A stretch of 62,000 nucleotides of DNA from Octopus vulgaris (GCA_951406725.2 OX597814.1:169156001-169218000), one strand, 5' to 3'; positions 16,108 to 61,270 are shown, counted from the first letter of the stretch. Translations and numbers: made by a program. Notes: generated by a model from the letters alone, not told the origin.

Positions 16108-16440
16108 CAGTTTTTGCATTTGGTTTGCAAGATTCTTTATGTGAGCTTGTGTGTTGAAGCATATTTTGTTGTATCTGGGGAGAGTCATTCTCTTTTGGCG
16201 CCTTATAGTTTAACACACTCTCCGGTAAAATTTCCACTTATTTCTTTTTTCTTTTTTTTTCTTTTTCTAAAATTTTATCATTGTGTCTTGCAACCTTTTC
16301 AATAGTTTTGAAAAGGTTACAAGGCACAATGAAAATTTTAGAATAATAAAAAAATAAAATAAAAAAGAAATAAGTGGAAATTTTACCAGTGAGTGTGTTA
16401 AATTATAAGCCACCAAAAGAGAATGACTCTCCCCAGATAC
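16108..16440. mobile_element. Fold-back repeat, ~132-bp arms, 5-nt loop
   Basis: 16171-16302 reverse-complements 16308-16440; family also at 18395-18800 and 54125-54195. Confidence 0.8.
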
Positions 16441-16939
16441 AGAGGTATTTAGTGTTCTAACACAACCTCCATGTTAAGTTGTATATAAAGTTTGCATTTT
16501 GACATATATATATATACACACACACACACACACACATCACATGATCACATGACTGACCAGACTATCAAATGTTGTTACTCATCACTGGTCACGATGTGTT
16601 TTACATCGCCTGGCTAAGTGAGAAGCTAACATTCTCCTGCTGATTGAAAAGGGGACTGAATGAATGTGAAACAAATTGTTTTGCCTAAGAGCACAATATA
16701 CCACCTGGTCTGGGAATCGATCCCATGAATCTAGTGATCATCAGTGCAAAGGCCTAACCACTAGTTCACATATATGTGTGTGCGTGTACACACACTTCCT
16801 GAATATACTTACTTATATAGCCAGGTATACATCATCATCTTCAGCATTTTTACCTCCACTTTTCCATAGTATGAGTTGGAGGGGCTCTTTTATGGCACAG
16901 TTTTATAACCAGATTCCTTTACCCACACCAGCCTTTCTA

Positions 16940-17506
16940 TTGGGTTGTCCAGAAAGTTCATGCCGATTTATTGTAGCTTACCTCTCGACTTCAATTTAGA
17001 ACATGGTTGAGTCCATAAAATAGAATTTGGCTACACCTCCATTTAGAGAACAGTTTAAGCTATGTTTTCATGGAAGAAGGTTTATGTTCCTATGACCTGT
17101 GTTAATTCTGTAACCCTTTAAAATGGAAGATAAGAAAGTTCATTTCCGGCACTTGATGCTTTGGGAACCAGACAAAAATTGATGCAGCTCGGCTAGGATG
17201 TGTTACCCCACCCTCCATATTCACCAGATATTGCTCCTTTGGATTTCTACTTATTCAGGTCTCTGCAGAATAGTCTTAATGGTAAAAATTTCAATTCCTT
17301 GGATGACGTAAAAAAATACCTTGATGAATTCTTTGCCATGAAACCACCTCAATTCTGTGAAGAGGGTATTTTCAAGTTAAAGGAAAGATGGAGACACATT
17401 GTGCAACAAAATGGTTCATATTTGGTTGATTAAAAATGTAATGGTAAGTATTTATTTACCTTTTTCTTTCCTTTAAAAATTGGCATGAACTTTTCGGACA
17501 ACCCAA
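16940..17506 (+). mobile_element. Non-autonomous mariner (internal deletion derivative)
   Basis: TIRs and TA TSD; MEDKKVHFRHLMLWE fused out of frame to LPHPPYSPDIAPLDF...ERWRHIVQQNGSY. Confidence 0.93.
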
Positions 17507-18394
17507 TAGTTTGCTCTTAAGACTTGTTATATAAGTAAATCAATATGAATGTTTACATTCATTTAATCATTTTATGCAAGGATATATTTATACCTGTAGG
17601 TATGTATGAAGATGTTGACATTTGTTAACTAATATTTTTTTTAGCAACTTAGTGTAAAAAGCTTGCTTTATATTTTAATTGATTAATATGTAAGAGAAAT
17701 AATGAGGATAAAGAGAAATGGAGGTGAGAAGGAAAGATCAGGGATAGGATGATAAATAAGGATGAGAAAGAGAGATAAAGAATAGTCAGAGAAATAAGAG
17801 GGAGAAAGAGAAACGTGGGAGGAGGGGAAAGAAAAAAGTTGAAACAAGTTGAAAATGATAAGGGGCAAGAGAAACAAGAGAGGAGCAGGGGGAGTAAGAG
17901 ACACAAATGAAATAGAAATAGCTCACACACACATACACACACACACACACACACACACATACACACGCACACATGCATGCACATGCACATACACTCTCAT
18001 TCACTCACTTGTACAATTTGACAATTCCTGAGGGTCTCTTCATAGACTGAAAAACATTCCATTAAAACTGTTAGCACTTGCAAAACAGTCATGCTTATCC
18101 TTCATCAATTTACCTTTTCTCTCATTCTCTTTTCTCTCTTTTTTTCCTCCTTACTCTCTCTCTCTCTCTCACTAGTTCTCTCATCATTCACTCACTCCAC
18201 ATTCACACATAATATACACACATAACAATGGATTGTTTAAACAAATGTTATTCTATTCATTATTATACTATGTTTTATTGACCTTTTAGCTGTGATACTA
18301 TTGAATAATTGTTGCTATTATTCCGAATTATTGATCTTATGAAGTTATTTTTCATTTTTCTTTTTATATAATCTTTGCTGCTCTAATAAGCATT

Positions 18395-18800
18395 TCTTTC
18401 CTCTCTACCTATATATCTATCAAGTCTTATTCTGTTGTGTCTGGGGAGAGTCATTTTCTTTTTGTACCTTATTTAACACTTCACCGGTAGAATTTCTACT
18501 TGTTTCTTATTTTTATTTTCAGAGACTATTGAAAAGGTTGCAAGACACAATGATAAAATTTTAGGAAAATAAAAATAAGAAATAAGTGGAAATTTTACCG
18601 GTGAGAGTGTTAAATTATAAGGCCCAAAAAGAAAATGGCTCTCCCCAGAGACAACAGAATATGCTTCAACACACGAACTCACATAAAGAATCTTGCAAAC
18701 CAAATCCAAAAACGAAATATGTCTTTCCTCTCTACTCTTATTCTGTTGTGTCTGGGGAGAGTCATTTTCTTTTTGTGCCTTATAATTTAATACACTTTGC
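18395..18800. mobile_element. Rearranged copy of the 16.1-kb fold-back family (forward, inverted, forward segments)
   Basis: TCTGGGGAGAGTCATT at ~18440 and ~18750, inverted at ~18640. Confidence 0.7.
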
Positions 18801-18965
18801 AAAGCATTTTTGCTGGACATACTAACAATTCTGCCAACTTACTGCCTTAATAATAATTATAATCCTTTCTACCAAAGGTACAAGGCCTGAAATTTGGGGA
18901 AGGGGACTAGTCGATTACGTCAACCCTAGTGTTTCACTGATACTTAATTTATCGACCCCAAAAGG

Positions 18966-19400
18966 ATGCTGGGTTACAAATATACGAACCCCAATAAACC
19001 CATCATGACTACTTATGTGATAAGGGTACACCAGATACATGCATCACAACCATTTTGTATGCAACATAGTGATTTCATACTAAGATAAGAAGCTCGTAAC
19101 TTTACTGGGGGGGGGGGGGCAAGTTAGAATTTTCTTCAGGCTGCGTAGCCCATCCTACTGAAAAGGTCCCTGGACAAGGGTTGCTTAAGGTTGATGAACA
19201 TTTAATCTATGTTTCCAGAGGTGAATTATTCAAGCTCCAAAGAATTCTTCAACACATGATTATGATCCTCCCCCACTATTCCTGCTCATGATCAGAGATG
19301 AACACATAGTGTCAACCACTGAGGGTCATTCTCAACTGGTTAAGGTCAAGTCACTGACAAGCAAATCTGCAGAATATTTGCCATAACCAATCTTTTACAC
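18966..19400 (-). mobile_element. Repeat family D
   Basis: Match to 29417-29778. Confidence 0.75.
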
Positions 19401-19439
19401 CAAATAATAATAATAATAATAATAATAATAATAATAATA

Positions 19440-19655
19440 TGTTTCTTTATTACCCACAAGGGGCTAAGCACAGAGGGGACAAACAAGGACAGACAAACGA
19501 ATTAAGTCGATTACATCAACCCCAATGCGTAACTGGTACTTAATTTATCGACCCTGAAAGGATGAAAGGCAAAGTCGACCTCGGCGGAGTTTGAACTCAG
19601 AACGTAACGACAGACGAAATACGGCTACGCATTTCGCTGCCAGCTCGTCGCAATT
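19440..19655 (-). mobile_element. SINE family B, internally deleted
   Basis: Reverse match to 14088. Confidence 0.8.
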
Positions 19656-59445: not shown

Positions 59446-59751
59446 GTCTTAACTGACCTGGTTATTACTGTTAGTTTTGTGCTGACTGTTGCACTTGGCA
59501 GTATTGATAACTCTTCAGACTTGCTGGCTGGGAGTGCATTGCATCTTTTATACTGGAGGCATATATAGACCCTAACAAGGGTCTATGTATATATAATAAT
59601 AACAATAATAATAATAATAATAATAATAATATGAGGGAATATTATTCCAAACTTACAGGGAAAAATTCAATTTAGAAATACTAAGTCAAATTTCACAAAA
59701 TATAATATATATATATATATATATATATATATATATATATATATATATATG

Positions 59752-59945
59752 TCTGGATAGATTCCTTCAAAGAATACCAGATAAGCCACCCATAATTGGA
59801 TACAACTCACCCAACAAGAACTCACTACTTGAACAAAACTTGACTTAAACAGGATTCGAATAATCCTATCAGGTGGTGCTATTAAGTTAGACATGGCCTG
59901 GACCAATCTTTGGTCGAAACATATCTAAGTTTTATCTAAGTTTTA
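59752..59945 (+). mobile_element. CR1/L2-type LINE 3' end
   Basis: LDRFLQRIPDKPPIIGYNSPNKNSLLE, stem-loop, (TATCTAAGTT)n tail. Confidence 0.7.
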
Positions 59946-60049
59946 TATAAATATATATAGGGAGAGTTTATGAAAAAAACAAAAGACAAAGACAGTTGGT
60001 GTACAAAACAAACATATGTATTAGTATAACGCTCAGGAATAGAAAAAGT

Positions 60050-60085
60050 CTTTTACGTTTCGAGCCTACGCTCTTCTACAGAAAG
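60050..60085 (-). ncRNA. Minimal hammerhead, core variant CUGUAGA, in a ~200-bp element between (TA)n tracts
   Basis: CTTT/AAAG stem I, CTGTAGA-A, GAGC-GTAG-GCTC stem II, GAA-ACGT-A. Confidence 0.6.
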
Positions 60086-60179
60086 GGACACAGAATAAAC
60101 AAAGAGAGAAAAAAAATGTGTGTAGTGGCTAACGATCTATCATGGCATCTATATATATATATATATATATATATATATC

Positions 60180-60784
60180 TCATCATCATCATCATCATCG
60201 TTTAACGTCCGCTTTCCATGCTAGCATGGGTTGGACGGTTCAACTGGGGTCTGGCAAGCCCAAAGGCTACACCAGGCCAGTCAGATCTGGCAGTGTTTCT
60301 ACAGCTGGTGCCCTTCCTAACGCCAACCACTCCGAGAGTGTAGTGGGTGATTTTATGTGCCACCGACACAGGTGCCAGACGAGGCTGGCAGACGGCCACA
60401 CTCGGATGGTGCTTTTTATGTGCCACCGACACAGGTTCCAGACGAGGCTGGCAGACGGCCACACTCGGATATGGTGTTTTCGGTGTTTTTCTTATGTGCC
60501 ACCGACACAGGTGCCAGACGAGGCTGGCGAGCGGCTACGATCGGATGGTGTTTGTTACGTGCCCACGGCACGGAAGCCAGTCGATGCGGTACTGGCTACG
60601 GTCCCGTTCGGATGGTTTTTCTTATGTGCCACCGGCACTGGTACCACAAGGATACAAATTCCATTGATGTTCATCTATTTGATTTGGTTTGACTTGATTC
60701 GATTTGACTTTGATTTGACTTGCCTCAACAGGTCTTCACAAGTGTGATTCGATTTGACTTTGATTTGACTTGCCTCAACAGGTC
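60180..60784 (-). mobile_element. RTE 3' UTR, single-unit sister of the 9052 element
   Basis: Same modules and GATACAAATTCCATTGATG; ~44-bp tandem duplication at the truncation point. Confidence 0.9.
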
Positions 60785-60980
60785 ATGTAAATTAGAAAAA
60801 AAAACACCTTTTATCAATTCAACAAGGAAAAAATTAAATTATACCATTTAGAAAAAATTACATTTTATAGAAAAATTAAATATAAAATAAAACATATATC
60901 AATGATTAAGTAATGTGCAAAATAATAAATGAAACGTATGTATTTGGTAGAATAACTATATATATATATATATATATATA

Positions 60981-61270
60981 TATAAAATATTATTAGAGAC
61001 AAAACCACTATTTTGCAAAACAAACAAGGAAAGACTTAATCAATACATAAAATTTTAATAAATAGTCAAAAAAACCGCCACTACAATTGTTTCTTGTCTT
61101 GATCGACAATCTTCAGATGGACTTCCAATAAGTCAGTTTCAAATTATGTGACTGAATTTGCAAAATAGTGGTTTTGTCTCTAATAATATTTTATAATATT
61201 TTACTATAAAATTGGATTTAATCCTAAATCTGATTTTTTCCCTGTAAATTTGGATTTATTCCCTAATATT
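60981..61270 (-). mobile_element. Miniature Penelope-type element with 39-bp perfect inverted repeat
   Basis: 60981-61019 reverse-complements 61157-61195; (TA)n on both sides; right segment resembles 59630-59700. Confidence 0.75.
61078..61120 (-). ncRNA. Minimal type I hammerhead ribozyme, fully intact
   Basis: CCAT-CTGAAGA-TTGTC-gatcaa-GACAA-GAAA-CAATTG-TA|GTGG; cleavage between 61082 and 61081. Confidence 0.85.

Follow-up and report, generated by a model that had tools for sequence, protein, structure and literature searches.

Positions 16,108 to 61,270 of a 62,000 nt stretch of the Octopus vulgaris genome (GCA_951406725.2 OX597814.1:169156001-169218000; this whole stretch is referred to below as the window) contain a series of short inverted repeats, or fold-backs, which we assign to four families of Penelope-like elements (PLEs), designated A, B, C and D. 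A first-pass annotation had listed these fold-backs and proposed that they are Penelope-derived elements without open reading frames (ORFs), that their inversion points lie at or near hammerhead ribozyme cores, and that ribozyme cleavage defines the RNA end while hairpin or template-switch priming creates the inversion. The features it described are real and the class of element was correctly recognised, but the proposed mechanism is unsupported; the structures are ordinary PLE insertion products, and the families are new.

Fold-back families and their architecture

The window, taken from a 2.8-Gb assembly with at least 30 large contigs, is AT-rich, and is crowded with (TA)n and (CA)n runs and with retroelement debris. 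All of the inverted repeats listed previously are present where they were placed: those of family A match over 39 nt with 100% identity (60981-61019 and 61157-61195), those of family B over about 120 nt with 93-98% identity and 614 nt between them (50784-50903 and 51518-51633), and those of family C are separated by a 27 nt spacer (23639-23805 and 23833-24012), while family D is represented by two copies of one hairpin (Table 1). The families are abundant, with 668-3567 first-look candidates per query in a genome search. Their derivation from Penelope elements is borne out, as copies of family B extend into RVT_1 and GIY-YIG coding sequence, and all four families bear the usual marks of PLEs: the hammerhead lies in the terminal region, the partner copy is inverted and 5'-truncated, only one end has a tail, and the targets are AT-rich or (TA)n.

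Table 1. Positions of the fold-back copies, their arms and associated features within the window
Feature	Position	Strand	Detail or evidence
Family D hairpin copy 1	16108..16441	.	long arm 16108-16320 (tail end 16108), short arm 16292-16441
Family D hairpin copy 2	18428..18714	.	short arm 18428-18519, long arm 18516-18713
(TA)n beside family C long arm	23510-23545		
Family C arm R166-444, long-type 3' end, ~87-nt tail	23539..23805	-	
Family C arm R134-377, short-type 3' end	23801..24042	+	
Family B main copy, 5'-truncated autonomous PLE: GIY-YIG C-terminal part, 3' untranslated region and partial tail	50768..51518	-	
Family B predicted minimal hammerhead, U3-A8 covariant	50890..50925	-	descriptor, consensus and 36 copies, fold
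Family B decayed GIY-YIG coding part	50997-51517	-	tblastn alignment with another copy's ORF, E=7e-71
Family B inverted arm, duplicating the last ~116 nt of the family (short-type 3' end, tailless)	51519..51633	+	
(TA)n at short-type 3' end of family A main arm	60957-60984		
Family A main arm, M1-178, near full-length	60980..61158	-	blastn of unit against 30 genomic copies
Family A predicted minimal type-I hammerhead, intact	61078..61120	-	descriptor, family arms, centroid fold
Family A second arm, inverted, 5'-truncated at M140, long-type 3' end (66-nt tail)	61157..61265	+	
(TA)n after family A second arm	61271-61311		

Inverted pairs were found in all four families, with the 3' ends of the two arms facing outward and their 5' ends meeting centrally. 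The outer flanks of the pairs are usually (TA)n, and most copies are bordered by it. Each family has two alternative 3' ends, spaced 66 nt apart in family A, about 35 nt in B, about 87 nt in C, and 52-57 nt in D, and each pair has one long and one short 3' end; this is so for 28/28 pairs of family A, 9/9 clean pairs of family C, and 14/14 pairs of family D. The 5' ends of the arms differ among copies, and the junctions consist of either a 2-5 nt overlap or a few filler bases.

Two explanations of the pairs can be weighed on this architecture. The first is that they are fold-back DNA transposons or miniature inverted-repeat transposable elements (MITEs) with terminal inverted repeats, as might be suggested by their hairpin shape, their small size, and the target site duplications (TSDs) of family D. 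The outer termini, however, are not inverted copies of each other, one arm having a tail of an extra 52-87 nt; the arms are 5'-truncated at many positions, the TSDs vary in length between 7 and 11 bp, and family B is continuous with an RT/GIY-YIG ORF (RT, reverse transcriptase). The arms are almost certainly not the termini of DNA transposons. The second explanation, that two members of a family inserted independently and in opposite orientations into the same (TA)n hotspot, draws on the great abundance of the families and their preference for (TA)n. However, the arms lie directly side by side, separated by 0-12 nt that include no microsatellite; about 90% of single family C copies carry the long 3' end, and given this the finding of nine mixed pairs among nine has a probability of p~2e-7 if the arms inserted independently; and a single TSD brackets each whole family D hairpin. 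Independent insertion is, we believe, extremely unlikely.

Family B, whose sense strand is the minus strand of the window, is the remnant of an autonomous PLE. The other copies all (29/29) run past the equivalent of position 51518 into RT. Pfam matches to RVT_1 are present in two of these (L037:299-1162 and L034:2012-2764(-), with E=1.5e-7 and 1.6e-10), and there is a weak match to GIY-YIG in one (L043:1358-2023, E=0.008, 16.9 bits against a cut-off of 22.6). Homologues, Octopus bimaculoides proteins among them, carry PF00078 and PF01541 together. The earlier description of the elements as ORF-less is right for families A, C and D. It fails for 50784-51633, where about 175 codons of a decayed GIY-YIG C-terminus are left, because 50997-51517(-) aligns with the RT/GIY-YIG ORF of another copy. 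The inverted arm is joined to the truncated main copy through a CC microhomology and is followed by (AT)n, and copies occur elsewhere with or without the 3' extension of about 35 nt.

The family A unit has no ORF and measures about 170 nt, rising to about 235 nt when the tail is included. At 30 loci, the main arms begin at M7-14, and the second arms mostly at M119-144 with a few at M35-101. A search designed to sample this family without bias, using only the 3' 80 nt as query, gave no matches, probably through masking of the words as too common.

Family C is a 446 nt ORF-less unit and was sampled without bias, the query being the last 81 nt of the unit with the tail left out. The two arms in the window overlap at their junction by TAAAT. 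Partial tandems of 1.3-1.4 units, an arrangement (pseudo-LTRs) that also characterises PLEs, were seen at 3/43 loci (L066, L071 and L077), each with one hammerhead. In three pairs (L061, L075 and L080) the inverted arms end at R179, R220 and R242, while the main arms all start inside a span of about 15 nt at R112-126, in the 5' half of helix II of the hammerhead, a possible hotspot for RT stopping or template switching. Five single copies (L111, L116, L117, L119 and L122) have a common 5' end at R215-218, and represent a hotspot of truncation or else a subfamily.

The family D unit lacks an ORF and measures about 150-205 nt, and its hairpins are bracketed as a whole by the variable TSDs described above. 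Copy 1 has its centre inside a degenerate form of the UUGAAAA box, at the unit's 5' end, and less mutated copies have a U3-A8-like motif at the extreme 5' end. At the other end of the unit, the junction GAAATATGTC (18714-18723), which had been put forward, as a weak case, among the junctions at or near hammerheads, proves to be no hammerhead junction but the conserved 3' terminus of the family together with flanking DNA; copy 2 reads ...AAACGAAAT at its 3' terminus, and the conserved family terminus ends ...ACGAAAT. A longer parent was sought upstream of single-arm copies and not found, as six 4-kb stretches share only the unit of about 200 nt. Copy 2 is also bracketed by a direct repeat of about 75 nt (18400-18480 and 18722-18796), made up of flank and the start of the short arm; it is perhaps a partial tandem, or else a duplication of unusual length.

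Hammerhead motifs and the ends of the copies

The Rfam hammerhead models match at none of the four fold-backs, whether in the window, in 34 family loci, or in a 291-nt stretch searched at E<=10. This is expected, because PLE hammerheads are of a minimal type with a palindromic helix III of just 1-2 bp. The sole Rfam hammerhead match is a sub-threshold one to HH9 at 15785-15866(-) (20.8 bits against a gathering threshold of 52, E=1.6), in which CUGAAGA, GAAA and a 5-bp helix I (TGCCA/TGGCA) are present and the palindromic helix III is absent; it is possibly another decayed hammerhead, just outside the fold-backs. As the Rfam models matched none of the motifs, we used an explicit descriptor and compared it with shuffled sequences. 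It called for the core, GAAA, H17 and a palindromic helix III, with minimum lengths of 4 bp for helix II and 3 bp for helix I. The descriptor finds exactly two sites in the window, 61116-61082(-) and 50922-50893(-), compared with a mean of 0.03 in 100 dinucleotide shuffles. A plus-strand CTGATGT...GAAA near 50937-50985 was considered as a hammerhead and rejected, since A9 is missing and there is no U16.1.

The full core (C3-A9, G12-A14, H17) is found in 61116-61082(-) and in family C copies, and a compensatory U3-A8 form in families B and D. In family A, the 39-bp inversion at 60981-61270 does enclose an intact hammerhead, as had been reported; it has helix I CCAT/GTGG, the core CUGAAGA at 61116-61110, helix II UUGUC/GACAA, GAAA, and the palindrome ACAAUUGU, and cleavage is predicted after A61082. 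Its core is intact in 33/33 family arms that span the motif, and helices I and II appear in the centroid fold. The family B motif had been called decayed. It has UUGAAAA in place of CUGANGA, followed by one unpaired U, helix II GGGG/CCCC, GAAA, AUAU and U17, with predicted cleavage after 50893, and the substitutions are those of the compensatory U3-A8 covariant rather than of decay. The family C copy in the window is cut inside its hammerhead, and 23805-23818 is the 3' remnant, comprising the 3' strand of helix II, GAAA, helix III and H17; the CGAAA noted previously in the loop of 23642-24009 lies within it at 23808-23812. In 18/20 other copies this hammerhead is intact and lies just upstream of the equivalent of 23806; it has CUGAUGA, a helix II in two parts, GAAA, ACCGGU as its palindrome, and A17, and it folds well (z=-3.1). 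Judged by motif, the predicted hammerheads of families A, B and C are real, and family D has a matching motif.

The AG/GTAAG donor-like motifs noted on some of the arms are also present, at 50878-50886(-), at 51535-51543(+), and on the minus strand of the left family C arm near 23776-23785. They are kept in the family consensus as AAG/GTAAGT in B and GAG/GTAAGA in C, 10-45 nt past the hammerhead; in family B the motif follows the hammerhead as AAG/GUAAGU at 50886-50878. The units of families B and C also have in common a 10-mer, GCATTTACTT, downstream of the hammerhead, which may be chance or may be part of a common RT recognition region.

In the model proposed initially, hammerhead self-cleavage would make an RNA 5' end, at which the cDNA would fold back or switch template to give the inversion. 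Several observations are in its favour. Three junctions in the window lie within about 30 nt of a hammerhead core; at least one arm ends in the hammerhead in 8/11 family C pairs against an expectation of 41% (p=0.03, partly through ascertainment); and one family B copy that stands alone (L038:3244) has its start no more than 2 nt from where cleavage is predicted. Moreover, 13/40 randomly sampled family B 3' ends belong to short inverted pairs with 29-100 nt between the arms, a figure that describes arm spacing only, and this places the junction in or beside the hammerhead.

A type-I hammerhead, however, cuts 3' of its core, such that a copy of the cleaved RNA would lose the core, and those arms long enough to include the motif retain the core and continue across the predicted cleavage site (33/33 in family A and 18/20 in family C). 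None of 38 family C 5' ends falls within 2 nt of the predicted cleaved-RNA end, and none of 58 family A arm ends from 30 loci is at M78, the predicted position of cleavage. The idea that junctions lie at or near hammerheads stands as far as closeness within the window is concerned but not beyond it, since the 78-nt hammerhead contains 9/38 family C 5' ends compared with 8.7 expected (p=0.52). The arm at 50784-51633 had been said to start exactly at the GAAA of the hammerhead; its start is indeed near, although the right arm begins at 51519, 2 nt ahead of GAAA and 8-10 nt upstream of the predicted cleavage site, and not at the point of cutting. The second arm also halts at a discrete short-tail site with the tail and flank left uncopied, and in vitro hammerhead mutants of the anole PLE protein PAc system leave insertion unaffected, with no reads ending at the cleavage site (PMC11167929). 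We therefore regard it as very unlikely that ribozyme cleavage defines the RNA end from which the copies are made.

The proximity of pair centres to hammerheads has a geometrical basis, because the motif sits close to the 5' end of the short units. It is 7-30 nt from their preferred 5' end and 100-200 nt from their 3' end; in all families copies begin preferentially 7-30 nt ahead of the hammerhead (M7-14 in A, R68-83 in C, 7-9 nt in D, and about 17 nt in B), and the 3' ends are located 100-290 nt downstream of it. In full-length pairs (families A and D) the centre is just upstream of two opposed hammerheads, and short truncated arms often end in or near the motif. If a fold-back were transcribed from end to end, pairing with the antisense arm would mask the ribozyme.

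We have also considered that the hammerhead region might determine the length of PLE mini-templates by means other than cleavage, with a promoter or transcription start just upstream of it, the short RNA as far as the RT start site being the main species mobilised, and helix II stopping the RT. The preferred 5' ends ahead of the motif in all four families would agree with such a start. The stable helix II would then be a stop or template-switch point for RT, and the clustered ends in helix II (R112-128 in family C, and two independent family B arms) would fit with this. We hold the proposal tentatively and think it rather unlikely; were it true, the rule of one tail per pair would constitute in vivo evidence for the use of a different RT start site by each target strand.

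Origin of the inverted pairs and other repeats in the window

We consider it probable, and hold with some confidence, that each fold-back derives from one PLE integration event, the inverted pair being an insertion scar and the proximity of the hammerhead positional. An element-encoded GIY-YIG endonuclease would cut both strands of an AT-rich or (TA)n target, and each free 3'-OH would prime reverse transcription of an element RNA. The strand started at the downstream RT start site would yield the tailed arm, and the strand started at the upstream site the tailless arm. The two cDNAs would extend toward each other, either to the 5' end of the RNA, as for the short units of families A and D, or to an early stop, and their ends would be joined through 2-5 nt of microhomology to give an inverted pair with the 3' ends outward. 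The family structures, the single tail per pair, the microhomology, the family D TSDs and the lack of ends at cleavage sites are direct observations on the genomic copies. Cleavage of both strands and priming from two start sites are suggested by analogy with in vitro work on an anole PLE.

An alternative in which the ribozyme likewise plays no part is that a single truncated cDNA snaps back and primes its own second arm. This could account for the duplication of the same 3' region in both arms and for the short microhomology at the junctions. It predicts, however, that the second arm should end where the first begins and should include the tail and an inverted copy of the flank, and instead fixed long and short ends are seen. 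Because the second arm always stops at the discrete internal short-tail site and copies neither tail nor flank, snap-back priming is very unlikely, and the hairpin priming of the first-pass annotation is similarly disfavoured.

Several points weigh against the derivation of each fold-back from a single two-strand priming event. The samples are small, and the family A and D loci were picked with queries that favour the architecture seen in the window. TSDs are unreadable in (TA)n targets, and the only copy with a GIY-YIG match is below the curated Pfam cut-off. The clustering of 5' ends is not fully explained: in family C, 7-8 ends lie at R112-128 inside helix II and five at R215-218, and in family B the starts of two independent arms, both in helix II, are no more than about 4 nt apart. 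The two-strand priming model itself rests on vertebrate in vitro data. Finally, no autonomous partner was identified for families A, C and D.

An RT ORF of 577 codons at 11304-13037(-), in which RVT_1 is accompanied by a PHD-like finger, was examined as a possible autonomous partner and rejected. It is a long interspersed nuclear element (LINE) and not a PLE, because its homologues have an APE endonuclease domain. Other LINE pieces in the window include 40968-43053(-), with RVT_1 and zf-RVT, and a separate zf-RVT at 47529-47906(+). Further inverted repeats are present, among them a 424-nt repeat at 20267-20690 and 22882-23296 with 97% identity, enclosing about 2.2 kb, and others at 36191-36617/37114-37480, 46883-46957/47569-47643 and 58979-59129/60180-60326; the ORFs within these other inverted repeats of the window have no Pfam match except for one zf-RVT. 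In a permissive Rfam scan, microsatellites and the family D hairpins also attract many sub-threshold matches to microRNA precursors (for example 15188-15261, 50705-50774, 18473-18613 and 16209-16402), which are artefacts of hairpin shape and low complexity. For annotation, PLE-derived hairpins such as these should not be labelled as MITEs or as microRNA precursors.

Comparison with known elements

The suggestion that the fold-backs are a cephalopod counterpart of retrozymes is only loosely borne out by comparison with the animal non-LTR retrozymes (LTR, long terminal repeat) reportedly described by Cervera and de la Pena in 2020. In these, tandem hammerhead repeats give rise to circular RNAs (bioRxiv 10.64898/2026.07.22.740005). 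The resemblance lies in the small, non-autonomous units (about 170-450 nt), in the hammerhead, and in the kinship to PLE terminal regions. It does not extend to the arrangement of the units, as an octopus copy is a lone arm, an inverted pair, or a partial tandem containing 1.3-1.4 units and one hammerhead. No head-to-tail arrangement with two hammerheads occurs at 30 family A or 43 family C loci, and there are no same-orientation arm pairs at the 30 family A loci, such that release of a monomer by two cleavages is impossible from these loci.

In the twin priming of L1, said to have been set out by Ostertag and Kazazian in 2001, a second priming event from the other target strand produces an inversion with microhomology at the junction. 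The octopus pairs are similar in second-strand priming and in junction microhomology. They differ in that L1 inverts an upstream segment of one RNA without duplication, whereas the two octopus arms duplicate one and the same 3' region, which calls for a pair of templates or a second round of copying.

The hammerheads themselves resemble the minimal PLE hammerheads described by Cervera and de la Pena (2014, PMC4209133), in which helix III is a palindrome of 1-2 bp, and which cleave poorly as monomers and are thought to work as dimers. The likeness includes the type-I topology, the short helix I and the palindromic minimal helix III, as well as the unpaired base between A9 and helix II. The replacement of the core pair C3-G8 by U3-A8 in families B and D is a covariant already known from PLE hammerheads in Schistosoma, and dual hammerheads on opposite strands 100-700 bp apart, as here, are likewise known in PLEs (PMC4209133). 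The long, two-part helix II of family C (5+5 bp) is a difference.

Canonical EN+ PLEs (Penelope/Poseidon, Neptune and related clades; PMC8557442, citing Evgen'ev and Arkhipova 2005) show heavy 5' truncation, an inverted 5'-truncated copy beside the 5' end, a tail of 30-40 bp at one end, a bias toward microsatellites, and a hammerhead in the terminal repeat. The octopus families share the truncation, the inverted copy at the 5' end, the single-end tail, the microsatellite or AT-rich target, the terminal-repeat hammerhead and the donor-like splice motif near it, and family B has the same order of RT followed by a C-terminal GIY-YIG. Two features are unlike these elements: the tails of three families are longer (52-57, 66 and about 87 nt), and most of the octopus copies studied are short ORF-less units. 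The structures of the families are known PLE biology in new family members, and no new mechanism is needed to account for them; the finding names and delimits four abundant repeat families in a large cephalopod genome.

The closest correspondence in mechanism is with PAc, which cleaves and extends both target strands, prefers AT-rich DNA for cleavage, and begins reverse transcription at either of two internal sites separated by the length of the tail (PMC11167929). These properties, together with a dispensable hammerhead, predict the architecture seen here. The PAc work is biochemistry on a vertebrate element, whereas the octopus evidence is genomic and consists of the long and short ends; the rule of one tail per pair is our own observation and is not taken from the literature. 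The sampled copies fit this recent in vitro model of PLE integration, and argue against ribozyme cleavage setting the ends of the copies.

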